From: Guillardia theta CCMP2712
Taxonomy: Eukaryota > Protista > Cryptophyta
DNA length: 46,978 nucleotides
Assembly: GCF_000315625.1 (NCBI RefSeq)
Contig: NW_005434420.1
Location: 1 to 46,978 of the forward strand
Direction of reading: 5' to 3'
How positions within the stretch are numbered: position 1 is the first letter of the stretch; every line of letters begins with the position of its first letter. A program made the translations under genes and the position numbers. Below are positions 18,401 to 25,703 of this stretch, piece by piece. A model generated the notes under the pieces. It saw only the letters and a program-made list of their open reading frames with translations. It searched no databases and was not told where the DNA came from.

Positions 18401-21280
18401 CTCGTTCGCCGCGTGAAAACTCTCCAGGTAGATGAGACCTGTACACCCTTTTCCTCGCCTCCTCTCCTCCTTTCCTCCTCTCTTCTCCCAATCTGTCCTT
18501 CACTTCCTCTCCCTTGTATCTTCTGCTCTGCTCTGCTCTGCTTCCCTTCTCTCTATGTCTCGCCTTCTGAGCAAGAGGCAGGTGATGATCACGACGCTGC
18601 TGGGAGCGATCAACGCAATCCTCGCAGCTCTTCTGTTTCTCAGCATCTGGATCTTTATCTTTGCGGCGGTGGGGTCAGACAATCAGATGTTCAATGACCT
18701 CCGGCATGGCCTCGTCATCGACTCTCGCTGGAACTTCCACACTCTCTTCAACGCCGTCCTCCTCCTCTTCCGCACGGCGACTGGGGACGGATGGTTCGAC
18801 CTCCTTTATGATGCTTCTGTCCGCCCGCCCTACTGCACGGCCTCGTCGCCGGAAGTGCCGGTGGGAGACTGCGGGCGAGGGATCATAGGGTACATCTACT
18901 TCATCATCTTCTACTTCGGATGCAACTATATCTTCCTGCCTCTCTTCGTCGCCACTCTCATTGACTACTTCTTCGAGGTGAACGTGTGGAAAGGGAGAGG
19001 GGAAGAGGAGGGAAGGGAGGGGAGGGTGAGGGGAGGGAGGGGGGAGGAGAGTTGAAGTGCTGAAGGCTGGCGGCAGGCGGAGGTTGAGAGTCAGTCGCTG
19101 TTCAACGGGGATGACTGCGAGACATACGCCAACGTCTGGTCGGAGTTTGACGAGGAGGGTGACGGAAGAATTTCAATCGAGAACCTCCGACCCCTCGTCG
19201 ACAGACTCGGTAAGATCCAATTTATCTTCTTTTTATTCAACCAGCCAAAGAACATTTCAAGTTTAGTTGCCTCGGTTTCAACGATTAGACAGATTTTGAA
19301 AAAGATAGTGGAGTTCAGGATCTTAGCTGGAAAGATATTCCAAGTTGAGTGGGGAGCAATGAAATTATGGGGAGAAACTTCAAATTCTGAGCTGACTTTC
19401 CAACGTGTTTGACAGCTGTCAATGGGCATCCAGCAGGCTTCAGAGTCTCGTCGGACCTCGAGCGGTTCAAGATGATCTGGTCAAGGGTCATGACCGACCC
19501 CAGCACGTTCCCACTTGACGGGCTGCGGGTGCCTGATGAAGTCAGCAAGGAGATCGGGCTGACAGTCATCACTAGGTAACCTTGAGCTGCCTTCCTCTCA
19601 TGCTGCCGTCCCCTGCCCTCCTCAGGCTCTTTCCATCACTTCTTCGATGCTTCCTCAGGATCCTTCCTCTTGCTTTCCTCTGCCGAACGTTTGTGTCCCC
19701 GTGCATGCTCCGTTGTCTTTGGCGTGTCTCCCCGTCCCTTGTCCTCGTCTGACATCTCATCTCAGAGACAACATGGTCAAAGCGTTCGGGAGCGGGAAGA
19801 GAGCTCTACGGATCCGCGAGTTTCTTTACAGCAAATTCCCGGAGATCAAGAACAACGAGGTTGAATTCAAGTATGCCGCTAAGGTGAGAGGAAGAAGAAG
19901 GGAACGGAAAGATATGATGAAGGAGATGTAGATAAACGGGAGAGCAGAGCAGAGCAGAGCAGAGCAGAGCAGAGCAGAGCAGAGCAGAGCAGAGCAGAGC
20001 AGAGCAAATGATTCTGAGCACAGGTTCTCTGCATCTTCATGGACGGCATTCGCGCGCCCATCACGATTGCAGATCTTGTAAACCAGGGAGCGTCCAAGCA
20101 AATTCTAGTGGCGCTGCAAGGAGACGCAGTGATACGGGGAAGAGATGGGAAGGAGAACGATCGTTGGCTGCCGCTCGGAGTTCACAATCAGCTGACGAAC
20201 AAGCTGGCGGATGGGGTGCCTAAGGGATCGAAGAAGAAGAAGATGCCTGGGAAGGAGGAGCTGCCAAACATCATGAAGGCAGTGAAACTGGTTCTCTTCA
20301 TTTCCTTCTCCTCTCCTCCATCCCCTCCTGTCATCGTCTCTGTATACTTCATGTTCCTTTCCACTGCTGATGATCTTCCTCTATTTGTTTCCTCTTCCTC
20401 TTCCTCCTCCTCCTCCTTATGTGACGTTTTGTTGCAATCAGGTACAACTTGAGCTCAGGCCTCCAGTGCTGGACCCGGACGAGCCTCCTCCGATGCCAAC
20501 AGCGCAGAAGGTCGGGGAGCTGATGGGAAAGATCCGCTTCATGAAGGATTCTTACGAGGATGTGCGTCCTGCTTCTCTTCCTTGCCTGCCCCTGACACTC
20601 TCGCTAGATTGTCGACCGGCTGATCGATGAGGTTCTCTGGGGGAAAGAGGAGGAGGAGGAGGCGCAGGAGTCTGTCATCAGCATCCTCCTTGGCGAGATC
20701 ATGGTGCTGTCTGTTCATCAGTTTGCGCAGGAAACATCATCCAAGGTGAGTCGCCTGCTCGACTTGTACCTGAGTGTCTAATCCTTGCCAAGATCTGGAC
20801 GCAGATAAAGCCAAGGGAGACCAACAAGGCTCTCTTTCGCTTCACACAGGCAGCGAGTGAGTCTCCTCCCTCCTCCTTGCTCTCCCCATCCCTGACCTCT
20901 CCTCAGAGTCGAAGATGCAACAAGGCATCGCGGCCGCAGTCAAGTCTGTGCCCCGCGGCTGGCTCAATGCGAAGAGGTCGCGGCCGGCGCTGAGGAGGAT
21001 GAAGCCCACGGAGGAGACGAGGGACCACACGCAAGAAACCGTCCTCTCCCTTGCCCTCAAGGCCCCCGCCGCTCCTGCTCGCCCTGCTCGCTCCTCCAGC
21101 CGGTACAAAGTCTCACCTCCTCTGCGCCAAGCGATCCGGAAGGGCAAAGTGAACTCGACGTGGAAGACTATGTTTCGAGGAAACTTCGGAGGAGGAGGGG
21201 CGGAAGGCGAGGGCGACTGGAAGACAGAATACAGCAAGAGGTTGGAAGGACTGAGGCGATGGACAGGCATAGAAGTATGA
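12468..21280 (+). CDS. Four-domain (4x6TM) voltage-gated cation channel alpha subunit, Nav/Cav/NALCN superfamily, many exons
   Basis: Four S4 segments: LRILRFLKPLGRVR, MRVFRIAKLTK, FKCIRIVRIVRPLQKR, LKLLRVLRVFRLVRRVK. S3 motifs WYRTD, GNRFDF, WNLLD, WNFFDF. Four P-loops: FNNF...FFQKNW, FQYF...LLGDRY, FDNL...SAQDNL, FHTL...ATGDGW. S6 ends LLNLTVATV, FIALILENF, VIGVLIDNI, LFVATLIDYF. III-IV linker GSALFTEQQRIW. EF-like C-terminal YANVWSEFDEEGDGRISIENL. Final exon ends IEV* at 21280. Confidence 0.93.
15873..15937. repeat. Intronic 20-bp tandem repeat x ~3
   Basis: tgcttatccgctgatgtttg units inside the channel gene. Confidence 0.75.
18165..18249. repeat. (TTCTAC)n microsatellite in channel intron
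   Basis: Directly visible hexamer array. Confidence 0.9.
19941..20005. repeat. (AGAGC)n microsatellite in channel intron
   Basis: About 13 pentamer copies. Confidence 0.92.
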
Positions 21281-21464
21281 CAACGAAGAGGATTAGGAAA
21301 AGGTCTGAAATGTCTGTATCATGTGTTGAGAACGAATTAAGTTAAGTTGTGATCATACCAAAATTACAACAGGAAAAATCAAAAACAAAACCACACCTCA
21401 ATTCAAGGCAACAAGACTCTAGGACATGATTCAGAGCCAGGCAAGGGGAACAACGTTGATCATC

Positions 21465-24400
21465 TCAAGTGGCAACAGAGATGCTCGCTTTATCCCCCTC
21501 GGCCTCTCCTGCCTGCTCCAACCTGTAGCTCTCCATCGTCTCAGACCTTCGCAGCTTCAGCATGCGCTGCATCTGAACGTAGCAGGGGAACGTCCTCACA
21601 TCATGCACCTGAACCTCCCCGATGATGTTCATCCCCCTTGGCCCTCGCAGCAGCATCGATACCATCAACACCCTCAACCCGCCCCCATCCACCTCTCCCT
21701 GCACCTCCTCCTCCTCCTCCTCTCCCTTCTCCTCCTTCCTCCTTGCCCTCACAAATTTGTTCCTGATCCTGCACACTGACAGGGGCTCACTGCTGTCAGC
21801 CGCCCGCAGCCACTGGAGGACTTGAAGCATCTTGCTCGGCCCGCGGCAGACGACGGAGAGTCGAACGGGGTCGACGATGTTGGCAGCAAGAGGCCACGCG
21901 GCCTCCGGTCGGCAGGCAGGAGCGACAAACGAGGCCGATGCCAGACGAGAGATGGCTGCGACGTTGACGGAACGAGCAGCATGAGAAACGTCGGACAGAG
22001 CTGGAGAAGTCGCAAGAGCAGGAGGAGCGTTGTCAACATCATCAGCAGCAGCAGCAGGAGCAGCAGCAGGAGGACCACTAGCAGGAGCAGGAGGAGCGAA
22101 CTCTTTCAGCTTCTCTCTCATGCGGTGCTGAGACTTGACCCGTGCATAGCGGACGGTGACGTCATCCTCCTCGCCCTCGAAGCGGCAGCGAAGAGTCACT
22201 TCCTCCCCTCCTGCATGTTGCACTACGAGACCGGTGGAGTGAGGCAGCAGCAGCAGCAGCAAAGACTCGCGGAAAGTCTCCGCCAGTGTTGTCGCCTTGG
22301 CATGGAGCTGCGCAACAAAAACATGCTCGGGAAGACACTGACAGGAGCGAGTGAACAAGGCTCGCGCCTCCTTCACATCCTCCTCGCTGACTCTGATCGC
22401 CTGCACCTGAATTCATGTGAGAGGTGAAATAGCAACTACATGCAGGAGCAGGGAGGGATAAGGAGAGCGATCAAGAAGGATCTCTCAGGATACACGTGCG
22501 CTGAAGAATCTCCAAGGATACATGTGAGCTGAAGGATCTCTAGGGGATAAATGTGAGCTGTTCTTACTCTCGCATCGTCTTGTCGTAGAGGAGTCTCTGG
22601 TATTTGATCCACGTTTCTCAACCCTTCCATGAAAGACGAAGAATACGAACTCCATGGATCGCTACTGCCAGAATAACAGGTTATCTCCACAATGATATCC
22701 TTACTCATAGGCTCAATTATCATAACCATCATCATCTCCATCACCATCGTCACTGTCATGATTTCCATCATCATCTCCATCATCATCATATTCATTATCA
22801 TTGTGCTCTCTGTCAACAATGCAACGTCAAAATTTCCGCATCACCTTGGTGCATTTTCATTTAGTTTCAAGGAATCTTCGGCATCTGCGAGCTCCAGCAG
22901 CAATTCGCCTCCAGGCTCCTTCAGGATGGCCTGGCACTGCGCCTCTGAGACTTTGCGCAGCTTTCGGCATATCTCAGCCACAAGGTTCTTGAGCTTCACA
23001 AACAAAGTGACGTCATCATTCCAGATGCTCAATCTCGGCATCTTGTCCTCAAAGAATCGATATCTCTCCTCCTGATTCATGTCAACGAGCAAGACGCTGA
23101 TATGCTGGGCCCTATCTAGGTTCTCCACCAATGCATGCTGACTTCCGGACATGTGGTTTGACATCTCCTTCAAAGGGGAAGAAAAGTCCAAATTGTACTC
23201 GAGAAGCTGCTGGCAGAGCTCGAGGATCCAGTTACAGAGGCTCATGTACTGGATGGAGAAGAGATGACTAGTGGAGTCTTTGTCCTGAATGCGAGCGAGG
23301 GAGTAGCAGAAGCTGTCGAAGAAAGTCTCGTCGAATTCTCGCTTCATCATGGCAAGGCGAGCTGCGGACTCCATCGACTGCTTGTCTATGAGGACGAGCT
23401 TCTCCCTATCCGCCCACATGTCTGCTTTCTCTGTGTTGAGCAAGAACCCCTCCTTGCGAGTGATGTGCAGGCGAGCGCGAAGAGATTTGACCATCTTTGC
23501 GAGCTTCTTCTCCTCTGCAGACGACGAGGATCTCGTGAAGAATCTTGTGAGTTGACCAACGAGGAGCAGCAGCACAAAGATGGGGACGAGAATGACCACC
23601 AGTACGACGTCCAGGCTCCAGCATCCTCCGTTCAAATCAACCTTGCCGCCGCTGCACACGGTGCAGTCCGACTCTTGCGTGTGACCCTGGCCGTCAGTCA
23701 CATACCCACCTCGGCATTTGATCGGCGAGCTCGACTTTGCGGGGCAAAAGGAGTCGATGGGGCAGAGCTGGGAGCCCTCAGTTCCTCCGACACAAAACGA
23801 ACCAGCCGGGCATGGCGAACAGAAGGAGAGGGTAGGATCAGCAAGCATGCCTGGCGGGCAGATAGCTGGGATCCAATGCTTCCAGGTGTCCATGTTAGTC
23901 TGCACCCATTGGCAAGCGACATTGAACATAGCGTCATAGACCTTGTCGCCTCGCGACTTCGCCAACGCACTTGCCCCCATCATCGCGTCCATATCTTGAG
24001 TGTAGAAGTTGAAACGAGAACCGAGAAATGCAACATGGCCGTCGGTCGCCGCCATGTACCTCCAGCAGTAATTCCTCGGCTTGACATTGGATAGACTTGT
24101 TCGGAAGAAACTCTGCGATTGCTCTAGAGTGTTGGGGTCAGGGCACTTGAGCAAGACGGGATACTTGTCAGACAAGCCCAGCAGGTTGTCATCTGGCTTG
24201 TACCATCCGAACATGAGCTTTGTAGACCTGATCGTGCGATAGTAGACATCGTCAAAGGCCGGCGTGCCGTCTCTCACCTTCAGTAGTGCGACTGGGAAAT
24301 TCAAAAAGTACGACAGCTGGAAAACAACGTGGTACTCGTACTGGACAATCAAAGGAATGCACTTGGAGTTGTTTGCCAGCCGTCTGCAAGCAGGCGACAG

Positions 24401-25159
24401 CCAGACAACATCGTTCATGCAATCTACCTCGTTGTTCTGAGTGAACTCAATGTACTTGTTCTTTCTCCTGTCGTTCCCAAATTCCTTCGTGTCCAGCGCA
24501 GTGCAGGTCTCCAAATATTCAATCGGAAGAATCTTGAGGAGAGTGTCAAGAGAATCAAAATATTCGAAGGCGCTGTATAGTGCAGGGTCATAGAACTTGT
24601 AGTAGTCCAGAAATATGTTTTGACGAGTGCCAGCATTGTACACATCACTCCAGATGAAGATTTGATCTACAGTATCATACTCCATCACTGTTAGCAGTGT
24701 AGGCTGTAGGTCGTTTGGCAGCTTCTGTGTTCTTTCTATCCCAGAGCTCCAAGATTCTATCGTGAAGTGCAAGAGAGGGTTTGTCAGGTTTCGGATTGCA
24801 CAGCTAGCGTCTGTTGGGTCGAGGCATCCAGATACATAGTTTACACCTGCTCCTGAATTCGGGACGGAGTTGTCGAAGACTGTGACAGAATACTCCATCA
24901 CCTCTGCGAGCAAGATGTAGAAGATCTCTGCAAGGATCCTCGCAGAAGCCCATCCTGCATAAGGAAGCAAGACGTCGTGAAGACTGCCATCAGCGTACCG
25001 CAGTTTCCTCAGGCTGCCCGTCTTGTTTACGTTGAATTGTGGGAAGGAGAAGGAGGTCTGCGTGAGGCATTGCCTCGGATGAGGCACAGGGTTGAAGGAA
25101 GTAGCTGATCCAGCCCTCACCACTGCCATCAGTCCTGCCAACAGTGGAAGCACCAGCAT
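21465..25159 (-). CDS. Type I membrane receptor: signal peptide, periplasmic-binding-protein (type 2)-like ectodomain, GCC2/GCC3 (ephrin-receptor-like) Cys repeats, one TM, cytoplasmic RelA/SpoT-like nucleotidyltransferase domain (~1115 aa)
   Basis: Exons 25159-22845, 22664-22568 and 22406-21465 join in frame through canonical GT-AG introns (phase 2, then phase 0). Signal peptide MLVLPLLAGLMAVVRAG; WASARILAEIFYILLAEVMEYSV and VACQWVQTNMDTWKHWIP bracket a PBP2-like domain; CSPCPAGSFC/LCPIDSFCP repeats; TM VVLVVILVPIFVLLLLVG; RVKSQHRMREK, NIVDPVRLSVV, RIRNKF, GGLR, GEVQVH in the last exon. Confidence 0.8.
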
Positions 25160-25703
25160 GAGCGCGCAGGTCCAAGCCGGTTACAACACGAGGGCGATCG
25201 TCATCCTCCTGCAATAGGTGTAGTTTTCAGTGTGTTTCATGTTCCAGCATCTCTTTAGAACTTAATATCGTCCTTCTAGGACTTCAAGTACAAGCAATAC
25301 GCCCGATTTCTACTCCTCATTTCGATGTCGCCCTCTCCTCGTCGTAGGCTCTCTCTCTCTCTCTCTCGCCCATGCGCACACTACCTATGTTTGACCTGAT
25401 CTCCTCCCTTCCCCCTCCCGGCTGATCTGCTCTGATGTGATCTGCTCTACTGTCGCCACTGAGTGTAGCACAAGCGATGCTCGTGCACGTGGAAGATCTC
25501 TATGTGTGCTCTGCTCTGCTCTCCTCTCCTCTTCATTCCTCCCCTCCCCTCCCCTCCCCTCTCCTCTCCTCTCCTCTCCTCTCCTCTCCTCTCCTCTCCC
25601 CCCTCCCCTCCTCTCTTTCAACTGTTTTATATCTCAGGTTCTCAACTCTACTGCCGACTTACTTTTGATCTGCTCGTATCGCCTTAACGACTCTGCGAAC
25701 TGA

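Follow-up and report, generated by a model that had tools for sequence, protein, structure and literature searches.

Positions 21465-25159 on the minus strand of the Guillardia theta CCMP2712 contig NW_005434420.1 raise the question whether a eukaryotic membrane receptor can end in a RelA/SpoT homologue (RSH) domain. The window analysed is the whole stretch of 46,978 nucleotides (nt), to which the coordinates of the locus refer. The gene in question, GUITHDRAFT_121812, had been described beforehand from its letters as a ligand-gated receptor with an alarmone-type output. The best explanation of the present results is that it belongs to a receptor family expanded in cryptophytes, in which variable ligand-binding ectodomains are followed by a transmembrane (TM) helix, a module of ~230 residues (aa) and a very divergent RelA/SpoT-type pyrophosphokinase domain, similar to small alarmone synthetases, that would be gated by the ligand; we give this explanation an even chance of being correct. 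What stands of the preliminary description is the fusion to a receptor and the RSH fold of its tail, while gating, catalysis, product and cellular location are parts that we infer.

Gene structure and transcript

Of the three minus-strand open reading frames (ORFs) at the locus, the first spans 22841-25159 (772 aa) and the last 21465-22406 (313 aa), with a short piece between them. The proposal that they are spliced into one frame is borne out by contigs of three public transcript runs (X1, X2 and X3, from three studies), which were mapped to 20900-25600. Exons 1-2-3 are joined within single contigs instead of ending at the TGA at 22841, and the contig joints match exactly the donors and acceptors predicted at 22845/22664 and 22568/22406. 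On the minus strand the junctions read AAG/GTGATG after 22845, CAG/T before 22664, AGA/GTAAGA after 22568 and CAG/GTG at 22406. Both introns (GTGATG..CAG and GTAAGA..CAG) are absent from the contigs of all three runs and are covered by 0 contigs, which indicates that the contigs derive from RNA. The spliced coding sequence (25159-22845 + 22664-22568 + 22406-21465) measures 3354 nt and has a single stop, at its end. It translates without any difference into P0001, the 1117-aa hypothetical protein GUITHDRAFT_121812 of G. theta CCMP2712; the gene model is already deposited in GenBank under that description. The contigs extend from about 25204 to 21316. Raw RNA reads of a further run (X19) numbered only 4 at the locus, too few to define transcript ends or isoforms. 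The parts of the gene are as follows.

25160-25204, minus strand: 5' untranslated region (UTR), minimum extent; contigs of X1 and X2 reach 25193-25204, and 25159 is the first ATG past an in-frame stop.
22845-25159, minus strand: exon 1 coding part, aa 1-771 plus 2 nt of codon 772, within ORF 22841-25159; its donor is used in X1, X2 and X3.
22665-22844, minus strand: intron 1, 180 nt, GT..AG, with an ATG/GAT-rich simple repeat inside.
22568-22664, minus strand: exon 2, 97 nt, aa 772-804, a Ser/acid-rich linker, found between both joints in X1 record 2, X2 record 7 and X3 record 10.
22407-22567, minus strand: intron 2, 161 nt, GT..AG.
21468-22406, minus strand: exon 3 coding part, aa 805-1117, RelA/SpoT-synthetase-like by predicted model, Foldseek and VIA comparisons, homologues and profile bridge (see below); core about aa 830-1100.
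21316-21467, minus strand: stop codon (21465-21467) and 3' UTR; X1 record 1 extends to 21316.

The simple repeat occupies most of intron 1 (22690-22810) and generates spurious Met/Ile-rich ORFs on both strands, such as 22436-22819 on the minus and 22692-23075 on the plus strand. An X1 contig of 208 nt runs forward over 25027-25204 and then back over 25027-25056; this fold-back most likely reflects an error of assembly at the transcript's 5' end.

Fold of the C-terminal domain

A phmmer search with the C-terminal domain against 1.84 billion representative sequences retrieved 234 relatives at E<=1e-3, including 73 at E<=1e-10. The alignment of 54 relatives, used below as the family profile, has the consensus APxKxxxRMREKL ... 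WPLxANILDPVRxSIVC ... RVKNKF ... DGYRDL ... IIGEIQxHD ... HxLYK. P172, D179, R182 and N216 are invariant in it (exon-3 numbering, to which 804 is added to obtain the protein numbering used hereafter). The AlphaFold2 (AF2) model built on this alignment (mb3878dea3869) reached a mean predicted local distance difference test (pLDDT) score of 76.7, with a core above 90 and two disordered low-complexity insertions. When the model was compared by Foldseek with the Protein Data Bank (PDB), the top 43 matches were all small alarmone synthetases (SAS) or their relatives (SAS1/RelQ, RelP, exported synthetase), from E 1.9e-5. RSH enzymes also took ranks 1-25 in the VIA comparison with the PDB, more than 5 Z units above Pol X. 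Solved RSH enzymes are the closest structural neighbours of the predicted model, clearly above other nucleotidyltransferases (NTases). ESM Atlas searches with the domain, both by shape and by features, reached RelA_SpoT clusters. The RelA/SpoT-like domain first read from the last exon is upheld in the predicted model, according to which the cytoplasmic end of GUITHDRAFT_121812 is of the RSH fold. A homodimer prediction of the domain, made without use of the alignment, scored 0.00 and speaks neither for nor against a dimer.

At the sequence level, the family profile matched PDB sequences only by chance (an immunoglobulin light chain, E 1.4). A link is provided by a second G. theta protein, the 1016-aa ORF L007:1990-5037. 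The profile matches its aa 828-978 with an E-value of 4.8e-13 (2.9e-9 genome-wide), and the Pfam family RelA_SpoT (PF04607) matches its aa 890-1005 with 35.4 bits for a cut-off of 27. The presence of both matches in one ORF constitutes a transitive sequence bridge to RelA/SpoT.

Active-site residues

The motifs RVKSxxRMREK, DPVR, RIRNKF, GLR and EVQVH, already recognized in the preliminary description, are all present and follow each other in that order. Those after the first were placed on Escherichia coli RelA by hhalign, whose register sets D983 on RelA D275, G-L1048-R on G-Y319-Q, E1068-V-Q on E335-I-Q and Q1084..L1087-K on H354..Y357-K. The first motif was equated with its RSH counterpart by motif order and fold match, without a residue-level structural alignment. 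Conservation is counted over the 54 relatives.

22110-22142, minus strand: RVKSQHRMREK, counterpart of the RSH ATP-phosphate motif R-x-K-x-x-x-S-x-x-x-K (K895, R899, K903); K, R and K each in 52/54.
21909-22076, minus strand: lineage-specific Ala/Pro-rich low-complexity insertion of 56 aa between the K..R..K helix and the D..R strand; gap in 52/54 homologues, pLDDT < 50 at model residues 129-163.
21861-21872, minus strand: DPVR, with D983 (putative Mg2+ ligand, on E. coli RelA D275 by hhalign) and R986; both invariant, 54/54.
21753-21770, minus strand: RIRNKF (family RVKNKF), basic strand, on the RelA stretch around DDYV upstream of PKPNGY; N invariant, R, K and F at least 90%.
21690-21740, minus strand: second low-complexity insertion, a Glu run immediately ahead of the G-L-R strand.
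21669-21680, minus strand: GLRV for family GYRD (RelA GYQS by hhalign); L1048 at the position of the acceptor-stacking Tyr (RelA Y319).
21600-21617, minus strand: EVQVHD, with E1068 and Q1070 on the catalytic Glu-x-Gln of RelA, E335-I-Q (EIQIRT), by hhalign; E in 52/54, Q in 53/54.
21552-21569, minus strand: QRMLKL for family HKLYK(I/V) (RelA H354-W-K-Y-K); columns H 30, Y 31, K 26, here Q, L, K.

The residues K895, R899, K903, D983, R986, R1017, N1020, E1068 and Q1070 are kept in GUITHDRAFT_121812, and across the family they vary little or not at all. The Mg2+-coordinating role of the Asp is known from RelA D275 and FaRel2 D90 (bioRxiv 10.1101/2021.04.30.441581). The Tyr column of GYRD contains Y in 41 relatives, L in 4 and F in 3, and the paralogue GUITHDRAFT_133234 keeps the Tyr; the Asp column contains D in 48/54 and V in GUITHDRAFT_121812. 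Other sub-lineages vary the same motif as GLN or GFN. The equivalent FaRel2 residue, Y128, is among those called highly conserved in SAS enzymes (bioRxiv 10.1101/2021.04.30.441581). Both low-complexity insertions are also found, shortened, in the MMETSP transcript P0004, which we take as the Hanusia phi orthologue.

Judging from the alignment, the donor side seems to be preserved and the acceptor side not, a combination that we read as either an altered acceptor or a pseudoenzyme. The acceptor pocket has been remodelled (Tyr to Leu; H..Y to Q..L) and, if the domain is active, the acceptor would probably not be bound in the canonical way; GUITHDRAFT_121812 may use another acceptor or be inactive. 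That all donor and metal residues are kept in both genera favours some retained chemistry.

Membrane layout

In a Kyte-Doolittle hydropathy scan, a heuristic for topology, the N-terminus showed a hydrophobic leader (aa 1-19) and the rest of the protein only one stretch of strong hydrophobicity, at about aa 516-538, with basic residues behind it, in agreement with the signal peptide and single TM helix of the preliminary description. The Cys repeats that this description placed ahead of the TM helix were also recovered, with 12 Cys at aa 434-513.

25103-25159, minus strand: signal-peptide-like leader, aa 1-19 (MLVLPLLAGLMAVVRAGSA), by hydropathy scan and translation.
23870-25102, minus strand: ectodomain, aa 20-430, with three N-x-S/T sites and weak OpuAC/ProX-like hints (Atlas features, sub-threshold Pfam matches in relatives).
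23621-23860, minus strand: Cys-rich repeats, aa 434-513, 12 Cys, ephrin-receptor-like/TNFR-like, by translation and sub-threshold Ephrin_rec_like matches in relatives.
23546-23614, minus strand: single TM helix, aa 516-538, then a basic stretch RFFTR..KK..K..R.R, by hydropathy and translation.
22850-23542, minus strand: conserved, presumably cytoplasmic juxtamembrane module, aa 540-770, matching no known family; phmmer search with aa 540-804.

These features suggest that GUITHDRAFT_121812 would be a type I single-pass membrane protein of the secretory pathway. Plastid targeting was considered and rejected: in the alignments, the conserved ectodomain (TSFNPVPHP..CL) begins within a few residues of the leader, so that a transit peptide would have no space.

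For the Cys repeats, Pfam Ephrin_rec_like (PF07699) is approached below threshold in relatives (P0008, 16.1 bits for a cut-off of 23.1, E 0.01; P0003, E 0.13), and it occurs in 90% of the members of the Atlas cluster matched by the ectodomain. The truncated UniRef name of P0001 begins with 'Tyrosine-protein kina'. The juxtamembrane region (aa 540-804) was matched by phmmer in receptors with other ectodomains, namely P0008 (2e-35), P0018 (CHASE, 8e-16), P0064 (Phosphonate-bd, 3e-15) and P0155 (ANF, 1e-13); Pfam gave no match for the module and the Atlas feature search no usable one.

The ectodomain

The ectodomain had been labelled a PBP2-like domain of ~400 aa, and this label was not confirmed for aa 20-430. 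Pfam returned nothing relevant on exon 1 at E up to 1, and OpuAC (PF04069) was not matched in GUITHDRAFT_121812. The hints come from Atlas features and from relatives. In the Atlas feature search the ectodomain scored 0.91 with a cluster of OpuAC and Ephrin_rec_like proteins and 0.90 with OpuAC clusters. OpuAC was matched below threshold in three relatives (P0154, E 0.043; P0003, E 0.22; a paralogue on contig C35, E 0.014), always on profile positions 2-53. Among PDB sequences the ectodomain profile matched best, at E 1.7, a ProX-like binding protein, in which the N- and C-terminal segments were collinear. A PBP2/OpuAC reading of this ectodomain is plausible on such grounds and is not established. 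The same ectodomain is common to four G. theta paralogues at 46-50% identity, on contigs C60 (twice), C7 (GUITHDRAFT_133234) and C35.

A modular receptor family in cryptophytes

The family profile gave 55 matches in the G. theta genome, about 15 of which are strong loci that make up the receptor family. The same C-terminal domain follows an ANF_receptor ectodomain in P0006/P0155 (GUITHDRAFT_110646) and P0065 and, by its UniRef name, in GUITHDRAFT_122367, a CHASE ectodomain in P0018 and GUITHDRAFT_162182 and a Phosphonate-bd ectodomain in P0064. The search for paralogues suggested in the preliminary description was productive. The long members examined have one strong mid-protein hydrophobic helix each, some with a weaker N-terminal one in addition; the exception is P0020, in which no segment was found. 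As read from these sequences, the reused unit is the TM helix, the ~230-aa module and the RSH-like domain, placed behind differing ectodomains.

All named members are from cryptophytes (Guillardia theta, Hanusia phi, Cryptomonas curvata and the non-photosynthetic Cryptomonas paramecium), the others being environmental sequences; names come from cluster look-ups only, and the protein search with the family alignment returned mostly metagenome proteins. One environmental contig looks eukaryotic, with fragmented gene calls and no Pfam matches. The environmental relative P0013 (24 contigs) lies 300 nt downstream of a same-strand ORF of 371 aa on contigs without Pfam matches (L012:2314-4447, an ENA metagenome scaffold from GROS21 samples). 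An uncultured freshwater or marine eukaryote probably carries P0013 and this ORF as two exons of one receptor gene.

The weaker tier of profile matches falls in ORFs of ~1000-1500 aa that lack introns and often contain two matches each. They form a second, larger G. theta family that includes G000:C1:833990-837036 (L007:1990-5037:-, the bridging ORF), G000:C64 (L006:2368-5499:-) and about 25 more loci. Several hydrophobic segments were present in the two ORFs examined, two RSH-like matches per ORF occur at many loci, and some copies are arranged in tandem or inverted pairs (C1:834103/840553 and C206:46672/56473). Canonical long RSH genes (HD_4 + RelA_SpoT) are two in number in G. theta, on C47 and C24, and contain the only two HD_4 (ppGpp hydrolase) loci of the genome (G000:C47:131263-132737 and G000:C24:131220-132315).

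Proposed mechanism and points against it

In the proposed mechanism, binding of a ligand outside the cell would rearrange the cytoplasmic cassette. The rearranged cassette would transfer pyrophosphate from ATP-Mg to the 3'-OH of an acceptor, either a purine nucleotide or an RNA end, and this transfer would create an alarmone-like signal in the cytosol. A bolder form of this explanation, which we hold tentatively and consider somewhat less probable than not, is that cryptophytes possess receptor pyrophosphokinases in which solute-binding-type sensors directly gate an RSH-type synthetase whose product in the eukaryotic cytosol would be (p)ppGpp, (p)ppApp or a new 3'-pyrophosphorylated species, in parallel to receptor cyclases. 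GUITHDRAFT_121812 would then be a member with a remodelled pocket and possibly a different product.

Several observations weigh against the best explanation. Pfam RelA_SpoT has no match in GUITHDRAFT_121812 or in the 54 aligned relatives even at E 10, and the hhalign comparison of the family profile with E. coli RelA and SpoT, although in the correct motif register, has a probability of 2%, so that it serves for column mapping only and never as evidence of homology. The two low-complexity insertions interrupt the catalytic domain. The acceptor-stacking Tyr is replaced by L1048, the GY motif is wholly missing in P0004, the closest relative (59% identity over the domain), and the substitution Y128A abolishes the activity of FaRel2 (bioRxiv 10.1101/2021.04.30.441581). 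On the sensor side, an 8-sequence profile of the ectodomain found no match among PDB sequences, hhalign found nothing between the ectodomain and E. coli ProX, and the AF2 model of the ectodomain, computed from 4 sequences, had a pLDDT of 45 and was unusable for a fold search. Lastly, no stand-alone Mesh1-like or RSH-type hydrolase for a cytosolic alarmone was found among the HD_4 loci of the genome, both of which belong to the long RSH genes.

Alternative explanations

The changes on the acceptor side bear on a pseudoenzyme receptor, whose RSH-like domain would have lost acceptor binding and would act as a regulatory, scaffolding or hetero-oligomerising partner of competent paralogues, as do pseudokinase receptors. 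GYRD has become GLRV and HKLYK has become QRMLK, the GY is gone in the Hanusia orthologue and the Tyr present in 41/54 relatives is the very residue whose change to Ala inactivates FaRel2. In addition, the lineage-specific insertions adjoin motifs, and the family-profile score of GUITHDRAFT_121812 is 231 bits, versus 279-292 for three of the four ectodomain-sharing paralogues. Nevertheless, K895, R899, K903, D983, R986, E1068 and Q1070 are conserved in Guillardia and Hanusia at 59% domain identity, which is unexpected for a domain free of catalysis, and the GLN and GFN variants of other sub-lineages suggest diversification of the acceptor rather than decay. A pseudoenzyme receptor is unlikely, if a serious candidate.

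We regard as distinctly improbable that GUITHDRAFT_121812 is a conflict or defence receptor. The RSH-like domain would in that case be a toxic effector comparable with toxSAS, CapRel or Tas1, acting by pyrophosphorylation of tRNA 3'-CCA or by ATP depletion via (p)ppApp, and would be fired by a surface or endomembrane sensor of a pathogen- or kin-derived ligand, in place of serving as a homeostatic second-messenger synthetase. Its top structural matches are the housekeeping enzymes SAS1, RelQ and RelP and include no toxins, and the ectodomains of the family (ANF-receptor, CHASE, solute-binding-type) are classical small-molecule sensors. No antitoxin-like or immunity partner was evident, although no systematic search was made.

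There is very little likelihood that the domain shares only the generic Pol-beta nucleotidyltransferase fold and is another NTase, nucleotidyl-transferring or cyclase-like, with a chemistry unrelated to RSH enzymes. Such a domain is at odds with the RSH enzymes at all of ranks 1-25 and their lead over Pol X, with the RSH-specific order of motifs kept in the family consensus (K..R..K helix, D..R strand, GYR, EIQ, H..YK) and with the transitive sequence link through a G. theta protein that scores above the Pfam RelA_SpoT threshold.

That the locus makes separate products, a truncated receptor of 772 aa stopped by the TGA at 22841 and an RSH-like protein expressed on its own, is scarcely credible given the single G. 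theta contigs of three studies that span exons 1-2-3, the uncovered introns, the identical annotated gene model and the equally fused paralogues, even if the 780-aa Hanusia phi transcriptome protein P0002 ends in ..VPR, the exact read-through end of an unspliced intron-1 donor (AG/GTGA, 22841-22846), and the Hanusia C-terminal domain P0004 was assembled as its own record. The Hanusia P0002/P0004 split could be an intron-retention isoform, i.e. a tail-less receptor, or an assembly break.

Comparison with known alarmone synthetases and receptors

The closest solved structures, SAS1/RelQ and SAS2/RelP from Bacillus subtilis and Staphylococcus aureus (PDB 5DED, 5DEC, 6EWZ and 6FGK), share 11-16% identity with the domain, and there is no Pfam or PDB sequence match. 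They are soluble homotetramers, whereas the domain of GUITHDRAFT_121812 is tethered to a putative membrane receptor, has a Leu for the stacking Tyr and two low-complexity insertions, and is encoded by a eukaryotic nuclear gene with spliceosomal introns. Contrary to the long RSH enzymes (RelA, SpoT, Rel) and the plastid RSH1-4/CRSH, GUITHDRAFT_121812 contains no hydrolase, TGS or ACT domain. The plant and algal RSH1-4/CRSH are soluble and plastid-targeted, and here a predicted signal peptide and TM helix are found instead. These long and plastid enzymes are controlled via ribosomes or Ca2+, while control of GUITHDRAFT_121812 would be exerted through the ectodomain. The toxSAS/CapRel/FaRel2/Tas1 enzymes and the exported alarmone synthetases (EAS) are bacterial or phage toxins or secreted enzymes, in contrast to a domain that would form the cytoplasmic tail of a eukaryotic membrane receptor.

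The predicted layout is that of receptor guanylyl cyclases and other single-pass receptor enzymes: the ectodomain, which is ANF_receptor in several paralogues, is followed by one TM helix, then by a conserved juxtamembrane module, and last by a C-terminal domain of the nucleotide-converting kind. It differs from them in having an RSH-type Pol-beta-fold domain in place of the class III cyclase and no kinase-homology domain. Outside the receptor family, the nearest relatives of the domain are the G. theta multi-pass proteins with two RSH-like domains (e.g. G000:C1:833990-837036), one of which provides the bridge to Pfam RelA_SpoT. These ~1000-1500-aa intronless ORFs encode several hydrophobic segments and two catalytic-type domains, in contrast to the single pass and single domain of GUITHDRAFT_121812.

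The eukaryotic entries of the 2011 RSH survey are limited to Mesh1, the RSHs of plants and a few divergent SAS, and the word 'transmembrane' is absent from it (PMC3153485). A 2025 paper describes the RSH enzymes characterised up to that time as acting in the cytoplasm of bacteria (PMC12691689). No description of receptor-linked RSH domains or of Guillardia ppGpp enzymes was found in the literature searched, in which the term 'RelA/SpoT' with its slash is unsearchable and a miss is possible.

Implications

In the literature searched, RSH enzymes are either bacterial (cytoplasmic, toxic or exported) or plastid enzymes of plants and algae, from which a nuclear-encoded, spliced, single-pass receptor with an RSH fold would differ. 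In G. theta, one cassette appears to be reused behind several classical ligand-binding ectodomains, in at least 15 genes of a single alga. If the cassette is active, alarmone-type chemistry would be directly controlled by extracellular ligands in a eukaryotic cytosol, and the family would be a tangible candidate for the synthesis of alarmones outside the plastid in eukaryotes. The natural Tyr-to-Leu variant of GUITHDRAFT_121812 is a ready probe of acceptor specificity. Overall, these proteins would represent a new class of receptor enzymes, comparable with receptor kinases and receptor cyclases.

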